64,000 nt of DNA from Chlorokybus atmophyticus (lineage: Eukaryota; Plantae; Mesostigma and Chlorokybus algae): positions 372,001 through 436,000 of the forward strand of contig RHPI01001132.1 in the NCBI GenBank assembly GCA_009103225.1, read 5' to 3'. Each line of letters begins with the position of its first letter. Position 1 is the first letter of the stretch. Below the pieces are notes generated by a model. That model did no database searches. It was given only the letters and a program-made list of their open reading frames with translations, and was not told the DNA's origin. Shown one piece after another: positions 2,220 to 41,600 of this stretch. The position numbers and the translations under genes are program-made.

Positions 2220-5200
2220 CTAGCCGGTCATCTTTTGAGTCTGCTCTGCATGGCATCTAGTCTGAAGGGCTGCGTACGGTTCCAATGAGTCATAACGGCA
2301 TGCGCACCTAAAGCACCGGATTGACCATAGTGTAAGGGAGTGAACAGCCTGCCAAAGTAAGTGGAATGCCGAGGATGAAGTGCGAGATCCTATGCCAAAG
2401 ATAATAGAAACATGAGAGAAGTCCAAGGTGAAGCCCATGCAGCGGAGAAGATCAGCTATCCATGACTAGTGGCTGTAAGAGAGAGGGCAGTGAACGAAGA
2501 GGTGTAATGTAGTCTTCATGCCCGGAGTGAGACAAGTCATACATCTGGGATCGAGCCTTAAATGCTGCAATTTGTCTCCTGTATACAGTGCTCCTTGGGC
2601 AATCCGCCACATAAGAGAGCGTTGCTTGCCGGTAGCTGCAAATTTATGGATGGACCTCCAGATCTGCAGCTACGGCAAGGAAGGTGCAAGAAGCAGCCAT
2701 TTTGGGAAGGCAGGAACCAGAGGGAGAGAGCGTGCACTCAGTGATCTATAGCCCGATTTTAAAGCATACTCGCACGAGGTGAGCGGAAAGATAATTGGGC
2801 TGCGGGATGGCCAGTTCACCTTAGCAGGGTCGCAGTGAAGATCTGCAAGTGGAGAGCATCCGACTACCTGGCAGAGTAAATACCTCTGCTTTGGCGGGAG
2901 AGCCAGCCAGTTAGGCGAGTTAATTGCTGGTCGAACTCTCCACCGGAGGGGCGCGGGAATAACTCTCACTTTGCATAGGGTGTGAGAGGTAGATGAGAGA
3001 GTGGCGAGTTCTCCAAACACCGCTGGCAGGACTCCGCACCGCCTAGTGAGAAGAGGATGCCTACGCTTTGTGCGCGGGAGGATGCTTCTACTAGAAAGAC
3101 TTGGCGAAGCGTTCCTGTCTGATTAAAACTCCCCTACCATTCTGCAGGTTTAGAAAGCCCGGAACCTGCTGACAACATGGACGGCCATGAAGCCGGCATA
3201 GGTGACCACAGGGAGAGCAACCCTGCAGATGTGTTGTAGGGGAACCCGGTAACAGAGTTGCGCTAGGGTGTAAGGCTTACGGAGAATGTCATCCCACAAG
3301 TCAGCAACTCTTAAGAAGCCTACGCAGGCCCGGGCCCGAAACCGCTGTTTGGAAGGGCCGGAACCCAGCACCTTGCCTCTGGCATTTTGAATGTGTGGAT
3401 TGAAGAAGAGAGGTTGGCGGAAAATTTTGTCGTAGTTGGTCGTATGGTGACGTTCTTAAGGGCACACGTCCTGCCAAGATTTAAGAATGAAGCGCCCATG
3501 GGCAGGGGGACTCTAGTGTGATCTTGAAGACCCGAAGAGTGAAGAGCTGCTGCAGGGGGCAGCCATTGGATTTGCGGGAACTTTGGGTCTATCACCCATG
3601 TCTTGAGATGGTGGAAGCCAAGCTCTTTCCATGGCGCCCAAGTTGCATCTAACAAACGTGATGCCCATTTCGCCATAAATGCTTTGGTTTAAAGTATCGG
3701 GTCTAGGATGCCAAGGCCCCCGTCTTATTTGGGGAGGCACACAACATCCCACCTGACACGGCCACTAGATGCAGGTGGAGCATCTGAAGAAGAGGACCAG
3801 AGCATTTGTGTGTGGGATCGTTTGAGAGTTTTCAAGTCAGCAGCTGAAGGCACTGAGACCGCTGCTATATACAACAAGCTGGAAAGGATGGATTGGTTTG
3901 CTATTATCGCTCTACCTAGCAGGGAGAGATAATGCTTGGACCACAAGTTCAATCTAAGTTGGACCTTCTTTAGGACAGCTTAAATCTTGAAAGAACTGAT
4001 TCTATTGAAGAGACAGCCCCAAGGGCACCCCTAGCAGTGTCGTGGCTTCTCCTTGGGGAATGCAGCGAATACCCCAAGCAGGAGGAGGTGCTTCAGAGCA
4101 GCTCTGCGAGACCAAGAAGTATGCCTACTGACTTGTAAGTCTGTAGGCAGTCTGCATATATGCAAACTGAGGACGGAGTCGGAGGCTAGGCAATAGTCAT
4201 CCATCAGAAGGGTGAATGCAGGATTTGAGTCATCATCTGTACAAATCAGCACTGCCATGTCGTCTGCAAAGGAGAAGTACCTTATCTTCAGCTCTCCCTG
4301 GACTTCCACTAAGGAAGGATCGTCATTAATAGGAAGCTCCAGGCCTTTGCAAGGGCTAGCCTTGAGGAGAGCACCCAATGCTTTTGTAGCTAATGCAAAG
4401 AGAGCAGGAGCCAAAGGACAGCCTTGCCTTACACTCCATTATAGTGAAAACTCTGAGGAAAGGAAGCCGTTGATAAGCACTAAGCTACTGCCTCCACCAT
4501 TCAAGACACGGACCCAACTCCTGAATGTGGCGGGGAAGCCTTGTGCTTGTAGAATGCTGTCAATGAAGTTCCAGTCCAAGCGATTCAAGGCTTTTTCAAA
4601 ATCCAACCGAAAAAAGGGCAACTCGTTGCTGAGAGTCAAACGCATACTGCATAAAGTCAAGGGCAGTGAGGACATTGTCTAGGATGTACCTATTTTTGAC
4701 AAAACGTTTTTACTCCATTGCCAAAACTTTTGGTAGGAGAGGGGAGAGGCGTGCTGCAAGTGCTTTTTTTAGATTAGTGTAGTGTAGCGGGAGAAGAGTG
4801 ATTGGTCTCAAGTTGCGCAAATCCCATGTGTCACCCTGTTTGTGGGAAAGCGTGATGACTCCCACTCGTTGTGTAACACCCAAAGTTTCTTGTTTAAGAA
4901 TTTCCTCACAAAAGACACTGTAGGCTTCCCCGATGATAGGCCAAGCGAGCTATCAGGCCATCCTTGCCAAGGCTTTTCTCCGGAGACATAGATAAAAGAG
5001 CAGAGTGTGACTCTGATGTAGAGATAGGTACACTCAACAAATCTGCCTTGGCTTGAGATACAACAGGAGAGACAGCCTCTACACCTCCGTAACGCTCTAG
5101 ACCTGTTTGCTGCGGGGGTGTTCGCGCTTGTGAACAGGTGTTGGTAAAACGCTTCAATAGCAACCAAGATGTCTGAAGAATTCACTAAGGGTGGGGAGTG

Positions 5201-15957: not shown

Positions 15958-17685
15958 AGGAGCCAATCTCGCTTCAATGTGAAGGAATTGGGTACATGCT
16001 CAGTGTACCAGATGGACATCGAGCTGGTGGACACGGAGCCGGTGTTCCGGCGGCAATACAGGCTCTCCAAGTTGGAAGAGGACCTGGTGGAACAGAGATG
16101 TAAGGCGCTGCTTGATGCAGGCCTTATCGAAGAGTCCACATCGGACTTCGCGGCAACAACCGTCATGCCACTGAAGAAGGATTCAGCAGGCAACTGGACA
16201 GAGCGACGCATGTGTGGCGACTATCGCCCCCTCAACAACAAGACCAAGCAAGACCGGTACCCCATGCCCACAGCAGAGGGTATCTTTGATGATGTGGGAG
16301 ACTGCACAGTCTTCAGCATCCTGGACATGCGTCAAGGGTACAACCAAATCGCCATTCAGGACGAGGACAAGCACAAGACCTCCTTCTGGGGCAACCGACA
16401 GTTGTACCAATGGAAGGTAATGCCGTTCGGGCTGAAGAATGCCCCCGCCAAGTTTCAATGCGTCATGGACAAGGCCTTGAAGGGGCTGGACTGCGCGCGG
16501 TGCTACATCGATGACATCCTCATCTTCAGCCGCAGCAACGAGGAGCATCTTCAGCACATCGAAGCGGTGCTGGAACGACTCAAGGGAGTGGGGATGACCG
16601 TACACCCCGACAAGCGTACCTTCTTCACCCACAAGGTGCCGTAGTACTTAGGGCACATAATTGTGCCCCATGGTGTGTATGTGCAGCAGGCAAAAGTAGA
16701 GGCTCTGGCAGCTATCCCCGCCCCGACAGACCTCACACGTCTGCGCGCTTTCTTGGGACTTGCCAACTACTATCGCCGGTTCGTGAAGGACTTCGCGAAG
16801 ATCGCAAGGCCCCTCAACGAGCTACTGAAGAAGGAGGTGGAGTTCGCATGGAAGGAGCCGCAACAGCAGGCCTTCGAGGAGCTGAAGAGCAGGCTCACCA
16901 CCGCTCCCATCCTTCAACGTCCGGACTACGCCAAGCCTTTCATCCTTCACACCGACTGGAGCAAGCTGGGGATGGGAGCGGTGCTGGTGCAGCACGATGA
17001 GAACAAGAAGGAGCCGGTGGTGTCATACGCCAGCCGAAGCAACAACGTCGCCGAGGCCAACTACAGCAGCTACGAAGGGGAGTGCCTCGCTGCAGTGTGG
17101 GCCATCTCCTTCTTCCGACCTTTCCTCTTTGGTCGGCAGTTCCAACTGATCACCGATCATCACCCCCTCAAGTGGCTAATGACCAACCAACATCTGACAG
17201 GGAAACTTGCTCGATGGGCCCTGCTGTTGCAGGAATACGACTTCGAGATCGACCACCGCGCTGGCCTCACCAACCAAGACGCCGATGGCCTCAGTCGCAA
17301 TCCTCACCTCAGCACCAACGACGCAACTGGAGCTCGGCCTGAGCTCGTCCCTGCAGCAACAGCCCCCACCATGGCAGCCATGTTTGCTGCTGCCGCGTTG
17401 CGCTCAGGGCGCAAGACCAACACCACGGCCTCAGTAGTGGCAGAGGAAATTCTTGCCCTTGAGCCTATCGGCCCTGCGGCAACCACACCCTTGGGAGACG
17501 CCCACGCAGCCGACATTGACGTCGATAACACAGAGCTGGCGCCCACTGACACCAGGCAGGACATATGGCAGGACAAGCCATCACTCTCCTTTCTTCAAAG
17601 TGGCCAGCTTCCCTCCGGCATGAGCGCTCGAGAAAAAGACCGAGTCAACCGAAAAAAAAAAACAAAACGCACCCGTCACTATTGA
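15958..17685 (+). pseudogene. Pol reverse transcriptase and RNase H (in-frame stop at 16642)
   Basis: RRMCGDYRPLN, DMRQGYNQI, MPFGLKNAPAKFQ, CYIDDILIFS; RNase H PFILHTDWSKLGMGAVL, YEGECLAAVWAI, LITDHHPLKWL, QDADGLSR. Confidence 0.97.
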
Positions 17686-35631: not shown

Positions 35632-38600
35632 ATGGCGCTGGTCATGTCATGCTCAAGCCAGGCTCAGACGGTCTCAGCGGCTCGGAACAGCAAAGCAGTG
35701 TTACCGTTGAAGCTGTCGCTGCGGCCAAGGCACAAAAGGCATGCTCGAGCGGTGTGCAGCCCATGCGTGGCGAACCTCCACGAGGTGCGAGGGCGGGATA
35801 CCGGAAAAATCCATGACGAGGAAGCTGGCAAAGAGGAAGAGAGCGTCTCGCCTGCTTACGCCACGCGCTACAGTGGCAAAGCGGTATGCCGCAGACAACC
35901 GATATGTTATGTCCATTCAGTGCACTAGCTTAATATTGCACACCCGTACGTGCACACACACGCATGTGCGTGCGGGTGTGTGCTGCTTGTTAACTATGCC
36001 ACAAACGCACCATCATCACTTTGGTAACCTTTAGAGAAGGTTTGCAACTATCATGAATTCAGATGTGCAGAGTTGTTTGTGATTAACCGTGCCTGTTACA
36101 CAGTTGCCAAAAAACAAGTTACCGCAAGAGCCGATGGACAAAGACGCTGCCTACCAATTCGTTCGCGATGAGCTCATGCTTGACGGCAACCCGCGCCTCA
36201 ATCTGGCGAGCTTCCTTACCACATGGATGGAGCCCGAGTGCGACAAGTAAGCATGACCTTGCACACTCAGTTTGCAAGCAAATGACTCATGAATGAAAAG
36301 ACATGTTTGCGGTGCAGACTCATGGCAGAGAGCATGAACAAGAACTTTGTGGATGCCGACGAGTACCCTGCGACGATGGAGCTGCAGAATCGCTGCGTAA
36401 ACATGATTGCGCGGCTGTGCAACGTGCCTCTCAACAACAGTGATGACAGGGCAGTTGGAGTCTCGTAAGTAGTCTTATAGTCATATAGTCTTATAAGTTT
36501 TCACTTTTTGCATACAATGTGGGTTTGTTGCTTGTTTGTTGTCGTTGTTGTCGATGTTGTTGTTGTTGTCGTCTCACCAACCGGCGGTTGTGCACAGGAC
36601 AGTTGGCTCCAGTGAGGCCATTCTTCTGTCAGGCCTCGCCTTCAAGATGCTTTGGAAGAAGAAGATGCTAGCGAAAGGCCGCAAACCCGAGGAGCTGCTG
36701 CATCCCAACATTGTGATGGGTGCCAACGCACAGGCAGGGCCACTGCATGTAGGCATTGCCATTGGTTGGCTGTCCCAACACACGTTGATGTCCCATAAAC
36801 ACCCCATTGGGGAGGAGAGGTGTACAATCAGTTATCACACGGAACAATTTGTCGAAGTCGAAATTTTGGGTTAGAGGGTGTATTCCGACTATTATGTAAC
36901 CTGTTTGTTGCCAATAGATGTTACACAGGATCTGTGCACAGCAGTAGTTCACACGAACGAGTCAAATGTCAGTGAATGAATTGCAAGCAACGATATAACC
37001 TTTAACTCAAGTTGTCTGAGTGTTTGATGCATGGCATGCCAACAACCATCACACAACCATGCAAACCCATCACCACAGGGATGCAGTAGCAGAGTAGAAT
37101 CCAAGCACAGTTGCAAGACAAGAAAATTGTTGATTTACCAACCCAAAAAGGGGTACAGGTACAGGTACAGGTCTTGTTTCACACAATTCTATCTACCTCC
37201 GCCAAACCTAAGCAACACCACCAATCCGCGGGTGCACTCTAACCCAACCACACTGCAACATCAACATAGATGTTCATGAAACCAATATGTCCCCATGTCC
37301 CATTGGTTGGCTGTGCCAACACACGTTGTTTTCACGCTGTTTCTCACGCAATGGTCCAAGAATCACCTACAACTACTAGGCACATCAAGTCTGCTTGCTG
37401 TACCAGATCGATACAGTTTCATTCAAGTTTGTGGCCATGGCGGCGGTGGAGGCGGCGGCGGCGGTGGCGGCGGCTGGCGAAGTGAACAAGTCAGCAGCGA
37501 CTCTTAGCAAAGGTACTTCTAAATTCTGCTACCCTACTCAGCATCCTCCCAAGCCTCCTTTAGCGCTTGGTATCGCCTGTATGTGGCGATGTCGATGGGA
37601 AAGTCGCGGCGAAAACCCTTCAGGCGATTCAGTTCCTTAGGGCAGGGCTGAATGTTGTTAAGATGCAACACCTTTTCCAAGCCCTCCTGTTTGATCCATG
37701 CACAAGGAATGACATGGTCTAGCTCCCAAACCGACCCATAGTTCTCCCATCGAATATGGCCCTGCAAACATAGCATTTAACTACAACATCAACAACACCT
37801 CAAATCATATGCAATGAACGCACAGAAAAGATACCTCCCACGCTTCAAACTGATCTTCAACAAACTTGATAAAGCGCGCCTTGTTGGCACACAGGAAATG
37901 TGCCCATCGTTTCCCTTCAATACCATTTCTCAGTAGTTGCTGCCCGTTCCTGCGCATCAACGCGTTCCAGGCACGCGTTTGGCCATCCACTATGGAGGAT
38001 ACATCCTGTGTTACCGATAACGCGAACGGGAAGCTCCTGTGAGCGAGGCAAGTAAGTAAGTAAGTTTGAACATGTACACATATGTCGTTATGCAGATCTT
38101 GAACAACAAACAAGCCCTTACTGTTCTGTCAGAGCGGCATGGCATTGGCCGCAGACTCCGCGATTCAGCTGTTTACGGCCTGCTCTGCAGATGTAACACT
38201 TGTCCGGGAAGGAGCAGGGAATGCATGTCTTGTAGTTCCTGCGGAGAAGCGAAGGTGCTAGCGGCTTACGACACGTGATGCAGGTACTTTTTCCATCAGG
38301 GTTCCTGCACGCTGGTAATGTACAAACTGACATTCGTCAGTCAATCCACCAAGTTGTAAACAGCCACGGTTACAAATGCAATGACAGTACCTGCATGTGT
38401 TGAATAGCCCTCCCTTGCAAGCATATCTTCAACTGGTTCGTTGCATATATGGCAGATGATTTCTCCTTCCTGTATGTCACGTCGCTTTTCTCTGAACTTC
38501 TTTTTAACGCAGGACGCGCATATCTTTCCGGTATTGTACACCGCAAGAGGTCTATCACAATCCGCATTGTCACACTTGCGTTCCTGTTGCTGCCTCTGCT

Positions 38601-41600
38601 CTGCCCGTCTCTTCTTGTCACAGCTATTGCACTCCACCCCCGTCATGTAAGACTCCACAAGTCCATCACAATCCGCATTGTCACATATGCGTGGTTGCTC
38701 CTTCCTCTCTTTCTGTCTCTTCTTCTTACACCTTTGGCACAACACCCCCGTCATGTAAGACTCCACCAATCTCTCACAATCCGCATTGCCACACTTGCGT
38801 GGTTGTTCGTTGCTCTTCTCTTTTGCCTTCTTCCTCTTACACCGACCGCATATCCTCCCTGTCATGCATGTCTCCACCAATCTCTTACAATCCGCATTGT
38901 TACACTCGCGTGGTTGTCCCTGCTTCTTCTGTCTTAACTTGTTCCTATCACACCGACTGCATTCCGTCCCTCCCATGTATGCCTCCACCAATCTATCGCA
39001 GTCGTCATGTTGGCAGGTGAGTGTCGCTCTGTCGATCTCAGCAACCTGTCGCTTGATTGTAGGGCTGGTTGAAGATGACAGGCTGGGAGGGGAGCTGGAT
39101 ACGACAAGCAAAGCAGGTGAGTCCGTTTCTGAATCACGCAACCATCTTGTGAGGTGAAACTTGATAGTGTCTTTGACAGTATCCTCAGCTTGACAGTGAG
39201 CTTGACATTCAGCTTGACAGTCATACTCAGGCGAAGTGAACACATAGACAAGCTCGACTACTGACTATCAGCTTGACTACTGCTTGACAGTTGTACTCAG
39301 CTTGACATTCAGCTTGACAGTCATACTCAGGCGAAGTGAACACATAGACAAGCTTGACTACTGACTATCAGCTTGACTACTGCTTGACAGTTGTACTCAG
39401 CTTGACATTCAGCTTGACAGTCATACTCAGGCGAAGTGAACACATAGACAAGCTTGACTACTGACTATCAGCTTGACTACTGCTTGACAGCTGTACTCAG
39501 CTTGACATTCAGCTTGACAGTCATACTCAGGCGAAGTGAACACATAGACAAGCTTGACTACTGACTATCAGCTTGACTACTGCTTGACTATCAACAAGTT
39601 TAACCAGCACACACCTGCTGCCTGCCGGCAGGGGCAGTTCACCGGGATCCCGCTGCTTGCGCTTCATTACCACTTCAACCTAGCAACCAAGCAAGTCAGT
39701 CAGTCAACTAGCAGACCCACTGCTCTTGCGCTTGCAGTTCATGCATGCATGCCAGCTGGCTTACATTGCTTGTGCATGCAGTACAGCCTCCAGTACTGAC
39801 CTGACTGCTTGCGATGAGGCCCCAGCTTAGAGCTGGACATGAGCACTTGCGATTTGGCGCAGCTCCTCTCCTAGCCCGCCATTCTGGGAGGTAAGTGTGC
39901 TGTTTCACACTTCACTCCCCTCCGCCCCCACTCCCCGCCCCCGCACTTTCCCGCCACCGCCACCGCCACCGCCACCACCACAGTGCATGCTCTGCTGCTG
40001 CATTGGCAGTAGGAGCTGCGTTGATGTGCGACGTGAGTGCTCCACCTAGTGGTACAGTTCTCAGTCGTGAACTGTCAGTGCTTGTCGTTATGTCAAATGG
40101 CGGGTTGGACATGCTGTTGCTGCCTTACGAGGAGGTCTCGCGCTGAGGACGACAAGCATGAGCTATTTCTGGCAACCATCCGTCACTGTGACGTAATGCC
40201 ACTGCCGCGTGACCTTGTCGCCGCGATCAAGTAATAATCAAACAATAAATAAGTAAATAAATACATATAACAATATACATATAATCAAACAAGAACAAAA
40301 TCCATATGACACACTGAGGAAAAAAAGTTATAGTGTGGGACAAACTCGGACGATACTTTGATGTTGAACTGAAGACCGTGCCTGTTTCAGGTACTCACAT
40401 ACTGGTATACTGGTACATGCATCATGTAGTGCAGATTGCTGCTGCTGGTGACTGATGTATTATATGACGGTGTTTGCAGAGCATGAGCTCATCATGAACC
40501 CAAAGAAGGCAGTGGACATGGTTGATGAGAACACAATATGCGTGGCGGTCATGTTTGGCAGCACGTAAGCTGAGTTGAGGATGCATACATAGGTATTGGC
40601 CGCTTAAGCTCATCACTCTTCTCGGTAGCTACACAGGGGAGTTTGAGGATGTCAAAGCCATTAATGACCTGCTTATGGAAAAGAACACGGCGACTGGATG
40701 GGATACGCCAATACACGTTGATGCTGCGAGCGGCGGGTTTGTTGCACCATTCTTGTGGCCGGAGCTCGAATGGGACTTCAGACTTCCGCTGGTAGATGTG
40801 CTTTGTTAGTCCCCAGATATCAGCACTTGCTGATGTTGATGTAGTCGACGTATGCGGATCTGTGTACAGGTGAAGGCCATCAATCTGTCAGGCCACAAGT
40901 ACGGCCTTGTGTACCCGGGCTGCGGTATGCGACAGAGACCACAAAGTAGTCAACATGACGCTAGATGATTTCATTGCTTTTGTTCACTGCTTGCGCAGGT
41001 TGGAACATTTGGCGGTCCAAGGCAGAGCTTCCAGAGGAGCTGGTGTTCCATATCACGTACCTTGGGAGCGATCAAGCAACAGCAACACTCAACTTCTCAC
41101 GCAGCTCTAGCGGGGTCGTCGGTCAATACTATCAGTTCATCCGGTAGTGCTCTTGTTTAGCTAGCGTGCGTGCGTGCATCTACACGTGCGTGCATATGCG
41201 TACGTATAAGTGTACGGGCGGGCGAGCTCGCGCGTGCCTGTATGTGCGTCTTTGATGGGCAACCATTGCGTGTGTATTCAGGCTCGGCTTTGAGGGCTAC
41301 AAGGGGATTATGGCCAACTGCTGGGCGCAGGTCCATTATCTCCGCCAGCGCATTGCAAAGCTTGGGCACTTCCGCCTGATGTCCGCTGAAGACCAGGGAG
41401 TGCCTGTTGTCGCCTTCAGACTGCAGGTGCATGTGACATTTCTCAGCCTACGTTTTCTGACATCTGACAGGTGGTGCTTGACACGGTGATACGCGTGCTC
41501 ATGCAGGATACAAGCAAGTACGATGAGCACGACATTGCTCTTGGGCTGAAATTTTACGGATGGATTGTTCCAGCATACAACTTGCCGCCAGATGTGAGCC

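Follow-up and report, generated by a model that had tools for sequence, protein, structure and literature searches.

The phage protein family phrog_1035, represented for instance by the product of a gene located beside the large terminase gene in Aeromonas phage 4_D05, is characterized by a W-x-N-Y-G..W-x-x-D-H..N-x-Q-P..N-x-x-K domain preceded by a helical region, and many of its members carry at least one CxxC ribbon further upstream. A predicted core fold of the same type is found in HNH proteins of giant viruses (mimivirus L246, Megavirus, marseillevirus, Bodo saltans virus), while several nuclear gene models of Chromera velia (A0A0G4HMR4, A0A0K6S833, A0A0G4GJT7 and others) pair Cys-rich repeats with an HNH domain of the phrog_1035 type. 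HNH endonuclease genes have reportedly passed from viruses to eukaryotes (Irwin et al. 2022, as cited in PMC9651163). Here we describe, in the green alga Chlorokybus atmophyticus, a nuclear gene with introns (or a pseudogene of very recent date) that codes for a modular HNH nuclease with a zinc array. It occupies positions 37534-39243 of the minus strand in a 64,000-nt stretch of contig RHPI01001132.1 (assembly GCA_009103225.1, positions 372,001 to 436,000 of the forward strand), referred to below as the window, and lies antisense between exons of a glutamate decarboxylase (GAD) gene.

The algal gene shares with the phage family both the domain and the helical region in front of it, but phage members are intronless, 120-300 aa long and equipped with one or two ribbons, whereas the algal gene is split by three spliceosomal introns and encodes a Cys4 array of five repeats, and the identity between its core and phrog_1035 members is at most 49%. 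The resemblance to the giant-virus proteins is one of predicted core fold (Foldseek E-values 3e-4 to 4e-2); no close sequence relative was found among them, and the algal gene has no viral genes beside it. The Chromera velia proteins provide the best sequence matches (E-values 1e-11 to 1e-9), however their repeats are of a different Cys/His type (~19 aa), their HNH domain is duplicated, and the similarity between these different organisms amounts to 42-46% identity over only ~50 residues. Homing endonucleases of the I-HmuI/I-TevI type and engineered zinc-finger nucleases may be likened to the algal protein by analogy only, as combinations of a small catalytic domain with tandem DNA-binding modules; the NUMOD or C2H2 modules that they use are absent from it.

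The minus strand of 37534-39243 is a genuine four-exon protein-coding sequence, with the following features:

38391-39243, minus strand: exon 1 (853 nt), open, without an initiator ATG; encodes a Ser/acidic N-terminal stretch, the whole Cys4 array and the opening CxxC of the zinc site that follows
38479-39030, minus strand: five-repeat Cys4 array (residues 72-255), repeats of 36-37 aa each with the pattern C-x4-C-x12-C-x2-C and a Lys/Arg linker
38312-38390, minus strand: predicted intron 1 (79 nt), GTACTG..CCAG, no RNA support
38122-38311, minus strand: exon 2 (190 nt), Cys-rich, with four CxxC pairs
38037-38121, minus strand: predicted intron 2 (85 nt), GTAAGG..ACAG, no RNA support
37835-38036, minus strand: exon 3 (202 nt), helical region upstream of the nuclease core; relatives align from about residue 360
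37762-37834, minus strand: predicted intron 3 (73 nt), GTATCT..GCAG; alignments of relatives cross the junction
37534-37761, minus strand: exon 4 (228 nt including TAG), HNH/His-Me-finger core WENYG..WELDH..NIQP..NRLK
39199-39588, no strand assigned: 100-bp tandem repeat, 3.9 copies with 99% identity, covering the first 45 nt of the nuclease frame

As the initial annotation had claimed, the four pieces combine through GT-AG introns of matching phase into a single frame of 1473 nt (853+190+202+228 nt; 490 codons), whose sole stop is the terminal TAG at 37534-37536. All three predicted introns end with CAG, and the length of each leaves a remainder of 1 when divided by 3, so that retention of any one of them would break the nuclease frame and splicing is needed. 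The stop that terminates the 300-aa open reading frame (ORF) listed for exon 1 is an in-frame codon inside intron 1. Unbroken homology bridges the junction of exons 3 and 4: in phmmer comparisons of the spliced C-terminal 161 residues with the collected relatives (e.g. residues 31-135 against one relative, P0011, E-value 5e-16 calculated against the hit set), the alignments start at a median of 10 residues before the junction, and at least 25 residues before it in one quarter of cases, and the only irregularity at the join is a 3-residue insertion. This continuity backs intron 3 by homology, while introns 1 and 2 rest on the continuity of the frame, the canonical ends and the continuing Cys pattern. 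The introns of the nuclease gene (73-85 nt) fall in the range of the RNA-supported GAD introns (64-133 nt), with a similar GC content, and the coding GC is 0.507 for the nuclease gene vs 0.523 for GAD; the host-like intron sizes and composition indicate that the gene has adapted to the nucleus.

We conclude that exon 4 most likely encodes a His-Me-finger (HNH-type) nuclease domain of a distinct phage/giant-virus family that lacks a Pfam model. The motifs claimed for the C-terminus by the initial annotation are present. Comparison with PHROG profiles identified phrog_1035 (E-value 3.8e-8), and the exhaustive HMMER search of 1.84 billion representatives reported 408 relatives at E-value ≤1e-3 (best 1.5e-11, 46% identity). 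The top six matches are Chromera velia gene models, some of them named "HNH nuclease domain-containing protein" in UniProt, and the remaining relatives are mostly unnamed metagenomic proteins of 120-300 aa. A metagenome scan with exon 4 revealed 19 loci, all at ≤48% identity except for three matches confined to the motif (17 residues, 71%); in the protein and metagenome searches no homolog exceeded 49% identity to the nuclease core. The alignment of exon 4 with 50 relatives contains nine invariant columns (W, N, G, W, P, N, P, N, K), all of them present in exon 4, and an Asp-His pair retained in ≥90% of the sequences and likewise in exon 4. Residues D15-H16, N36 and N45 of exon 4 occupy invariant or near-invariant columns of the family, which match the positions expected for the catalytic His at the end of the first strand and for the metal and structural residues. 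The phrog_1035 profile is matched by 50 of the 51 aligned sequences, and membership of the algal domain follows from its profile match together with an upstream helical region contiguous with the core.

HNH-type signals from Pfam were confined to sub-threshold matches among the 51 aligned sequences (HNH_4 in 26, GmrSD_C in 14, HNH in 13); no exon piece reached any Pfam or NCBIfam model, and the profile search against PDB returned BrxU (GmrSD) alone (E-value 0.48). The AlphaFold2 (AF2) model of exon 4 (mean predicted local distance difference test score, pLDDT, 88) comprises a strand (12-16), another strand (37-41) and a helix (42-47), the succession expected for a beta-beta-alpha-metal core. 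Its PDB matches are mostly HNH/His-Me nucleases (ZRANB3, Gme HNH, Cas9 HNH, colicins E7/E9, SspE, BrxU, Cap5), at low scores (Foldseek E-value ~1, VIA-align Z ≤2.6). Structure models of viral proteins were matched better (Foldseek E-values 3e-4 to 4e-2), among them those of Megavirus, mimivirus L246, the Bodo saltans virus "intron encoded endonuclease", marseillevirus HNH endonucleases and a phage "Stc1 domain" protein. Membership in the T4 endonuclease VII family proper was rejected, as none of the 51 family members matched the Pfam Endonuclease_7 model at E-value ≤1; the label "endonuclease VII" that phrog_1035 bears stems from the PHROG annotation only. Hence, of the HNH/endonuclease-VII-like viral module first proposed, the phage/giant-virus HNH family stands and "endonuclease VII" does not. 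Of the analyses suggested alongside that proposal, the profile search succeeded with PHROG, with the Pfam HNH profiles below threshold; the structure prediction gave a model with HNH folds as the top PDB matches, at the weak scores quoted; and the phylogeny of the domain (153 rows) lacked resolution. In this tree the query sits on a long branch and points to no particular donor; the Chromera domains belong to a set of 46 rows with 95% support in the Shimodaira-Hasegawa-like approximate likelihood ratio test (SH-aLRT).

The five repeats of 36-37 aa with basic linkers were found as first described; they begin at residues 77, 114, 151, 187 and 224, correspond to a 108-111-nt tandem array in the nucleotide sequence, and are followed by five further CxxC pairs at residues 264, 295, 314, 323 and 338. 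All 20 Cys residues are kept across the five repeats despite pairwise nonsynonymous divergence (dN) of 0.24-0.61, and several non-Cys columns are likewise invariant. For the youngest repeat pairs the ratio of nonsynonymous to synonymous divergence (dN/dS) is near or above 1 (1.46 for r3-r4 and 1.78 for r1-r2, both from few sites). This pattern fits conserved zinc ligands combined with freely changing surface positions, and it is evidence of past selection, not of present function. The Cys4 modules and the CxxC sites presumably bind zinc and DNA.

Searches with exon 1 returned no homolog of 156-497 aa among 5.8 billion proteins (word-indexed search) and no match in the JGI metagenome contigs, and a hidden Markov model (HMM) of the five repeats gave nothing significant against 151 HNH relatives and four viral loci. 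Language-model neighbors are weak (0.84) and GATA- or double-zinc-ribbon-like, while exon 2 shows weak FYVE_2 and double-zinc-ribbon signals in Pfam (E-values 0.02-0.05). When two repeats were modelled with AF2 (pLDDT 75), each formed a helix-loop-helix with the Cys pairs at the helix N-termini, and the model had no fold match in PDB or among the Swiss-Prot models. At least one CxxC pair precedes the HNH domain in about half of the 151 relatives, and in ten of them the zinc ribbons, accompanied by basic linkers, number two to four, with three or four in a few cases. An IMG/VR contig (L001, positions 3194-4171) encodes a 325-aa protein, typical of the phage representatives of phrog_1035, with one zinc ribbon and the same HNH domain; its gene overlaps the start of the ORF that follows downstream. 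The initial annotation did not recognize the architecture of the algal protein from known transposable-element superfamilies. The plan of zinc ribbons followed by a phrog_1035-type HNH domain is already known, and it is the five-fold Cys4 array, detected in no relative, that appears to be new.

The 5' end of the gene does not agree with its earlier description as "intact". Codon 1 of the nuclease frame is GTG, a stop is located 7 codons upstream, and the earliest in-frame ATG is found at about residue 89, within finger 1. Enumeration of upstream ATG-containing exons and acceptors yielded 569 formally possible combinations and is hence uninformative on the start. The 100-bp tandem repeat at 39199-39588, which overlaps this end, is composed of the 12-nt sub-repeat TCAGCTTGACAG.

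The exons of the surrounding GAD gene can be recognized from 36083 to about 41677 and align to residues 31-442 of E. coli GadB without internal stops. The part that contains the nuclease gene is organized as follows:

36598-36737, plus strand: GAD coding exon; joint 36464>36598 in RNA, end placed by the GadB alignment and followed by GG, not a GT donor
36738-40230, no strand assigned: 3493-bp block that separates the GAD exon end from a complete short GT..AG intron, with the nuclease gene on the opposite strand; proposed insertion
40231-40333, plus strand: GAD intron, probably the original one (103 nt, AT-rich, GT..AG), from the coordinates of X3 contig 13
40334-40387, plus strand: next GAD coding exon, from RNA contigs and the GadB alignment
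37893-38045, 38189-38279, 38509-38646, 39063-39112, 39628-39694, 39782-39888 and 40077-40230, plus strand: seven mini-exons with joints in the RNA data sets X1-X3

GadB has two residues between a conserved Gln and Trp, and this spacing makes 36737 the last base of the upstream exon (..GCA CAG GCA G) and 40334 the first base of the following one (TG TGG..). In a 1893-nt X3 contig 40230 is joined to 40334, and the skipped 103 nt, an ordinary length for an intron, start with GTAATA, end with TATAG and contain 21% GC. Thus the acceptor 40333|40334 is used, whereas no GT follows the GAD exon end at 36737, which is read through in RNA contigs of two independent studies (to 36929 in X1 and to 36889 in X3). 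Transcripts of the reference-genotype GAD continue past 36737 to a stop at about 36872, so the reference GAD copy may be non-functional. The simplest reading would be that 36738-40230 was inserted between the last base of the GAD exon and the donor of the 103-nt intron; a point mutation that turned the GT donor of a long intron into GG would explain the left edge equally well. The earlier placement of the gene antisense inside a GAD intron is therefore correct as to the minus strand, the position between GAD exons and the used acceptor, and has to be modified as to the left side, where the exon/donor boundary is disrupted and no GT follows 36737. A simple nested gene in a host intron was rejected on account of the GG after 36737, the read-through contigs, and, in the RNA contigs, the lack of minus-strand joints and the zero depth over exon 4. 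An endogenous giant-virus element was likewise rejected, given the three introns, the host-like GC content and the flanking ORFs of the block, which have no family matches.

No terminal inverted repeat (TIR), target-site duplication (TSD) or second copy of the block was found within the window, and mobility is therefore unsupported. Pfam matched none of nine ORFs in its arms, and neither Rfam nor tRNA scanning returned anything over 36000-41000. Inverted GGC-rich/GCC-rich microsatellites at 37446-37477 and 39950-39981 flank the nuclease gene (32 nt, 84% complementary, 2.5 kb apart), and the left arm of the block contains a 34-nt direct repeat with 91% identity (36759-36792 and 37300-37333). 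Elsewhere in the window, the plus strand at 16663-17685 carries a Gypsy reverse transcriptase/RNase H ORF, with best named matches in Closterium and Klebsormidium nitens (53-58% identity). These matches point to a streptophyte alga as the probable source of the DNA, against Chromera, and the Chromera proteins are hence not paralogs.

The RNA evidence consists of three data sets (X1-X3) of assembled contigs without strand information. All 13 splice joints found over 36300-40800 are on the plus strand, with GT..AG ends, or GC..AG ends after a two-base shift, and none of the three predicted minus-strand junctions, for which the initial annotation had recommended stranded RNA-seq, appears among them. 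No run has any depth over 37659-37809 (exon 4) or over 38716-39017 (mid-array), two stretches that lie in plus-strand introns. The RNA contigs thus offer no evidence that the nuclease gene is expressed. The joint 38045>38131 was rejected as a counterpart of predicted intron 2: although it too skips 85 nt, it belongs to the plus strand, has GC..AG ends and is shifted by 9 nt. Around 38046-38190 the plus strand shows alternative splicing of both the GC..AG and the GT..AG type.

On the plus strand the seven mini-exons are chained into the 3' exons of GAD; four of the seven lie opposite nuclease exons 1, 2 and 3. None of the reading frames of the chain is free of stops, and the chain contains no long ORF. 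The splice from 40230 to 40334 makes an ATG in the GAD frame, at the Val-Trp position of GAD, so that the chimeric RNA could at most encode an N-terminally truncated GAD. In X2 a highly expressed GAD mRNA (depth 459) skips the whole 3.7-kb interval and exhibits nine single-base differences (36318-36733 and 40477-40538); this mRNA originates from a paralog or another genotype. The X2 contigs of the reference type are present at ~6-9% of their depth in X1.

Altogether, the locus probably holds a copy, silent or disabled not long ago, of a nuclease gene that was acquired horizontally or is selfish (homing-like) and came in together with the block; we infer both the insertion event and the selfish nature. 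The encoded protein would be a modular nuclease that combines five Cys4 modules and additional CxxC sites, a helical linker and a C-terminal His-Me-finger domain. By analogy with the phrog_1035 family, the His of ELDH would serve in this domain as the general base, and the fold and the metal would be kept in place by the conserved Asn residues; nuclease activity is likewise a prediction. The gene is a highly diverged nuclear copy, antisense in a 3.5-kb block that would part a GAD exon from its donor and short intron. Transcripts of the host strand traverse this block and are spliced at its internal sites, and the nuclease gene itself is devoid of an initiator ATG and of detectable RNA. Several observations weigh against this explanation: no initiator ATG opens the frame, the Pfam HNH models stay below threshold, the Foldseek matches to solved HNH domains are weak, none of the predicted junctions is seen in RNA contigs (a kind of evidence that reveals the presence of a transcript more reliably than its absence), the insertion boundaries are themselves deduced, with the GT-to-GG mutation in a long intron fitting the left edge equally, and no TIR, TSD, empty site or second copy of the block was found.

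The alternative that survives best, still an unlikely one in our view, is a working domesticated host gene that lies antisense between the GAD exons, is expressed in conditions other than those sampled and starts in an unrecognised upstream exon. The 490 codons open without a frameshift, the host-like introns and composition, the conservation of the Cys ligands and catalytic residues, and the many formally possible upstream ATG-exon/acceptor combinations agree with such a gene, but there is no minus-strand RNA in the three data sets, no homolog above 49% identity was found, the 5' end falls within a recent 99%-identical tandem repeat, and host-strand transcripts overlap the gene in antisense. 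It appears rather doubtful, and is offered as a speculation, that the locus represents one copy of an undescribed nuclear selfish family in a green alga, in which a rapidly diversifying Cys4 array would aim the HNH domain in the manner of a natural "zinc-finger nuclease", and whose members would insert by cut-and-repair, with no TSD or terminal repeats, in the present case exactly at an exon/intron boundary, and gain spliceosomal introns later. We regard as improbable that the gene belongs, as a member still active today, to a hitherto undescribed class of HNH-encoding mobile elements of the nucleus, in which the target would be cut by the zinc-array nuclease and the element copied by repair without TSD or TIR. 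The position of the block exactly between the last base of the exon and a complete GT..AG intron, the lack of TSD and TIR, and the presence of annotated intron-encoded or homing endonucleases among the phage and giant-virus relatives would suit this scenario; however, the window holds a single copy, the gene shows neither ATG nor expression, and GAD without the exons of the block was seen as mRNA only, not at the DNA level. Finally, a chance open frame or an artificial join of unrelated ORFs, with which the lack of RNA support and of a Pfam match on any exon piece would be compatible, is very hard to reconcile with the significant family matches, the homology over a splice junction, the five Cys-conserving repeats and the need for all three introns, and can be dismissed almost entirely.

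To our knowledge, the role of HNH genes of the phage/giant-virus type in eukaryotic nuclei has not been studied. The copy in Chlorokybus atmophyticus provides a case in which such a gene is fully adapted to the nucleus, with introns and a host-like composition, and is fused to a zinc array without a public relative, where the variable positions of recent repeats appear to change faster than silent sites. If the block was indeed inserted, the locus would also be a clear example of an insertion partly exonised on the host strand, with chimeric GAD transcripts as the outcome. Should the family prove mobile, it would amount to a novel type of homing-like element in the nucleus and to a naturally occurring modular nuclease that may be of use for DNA targeting.

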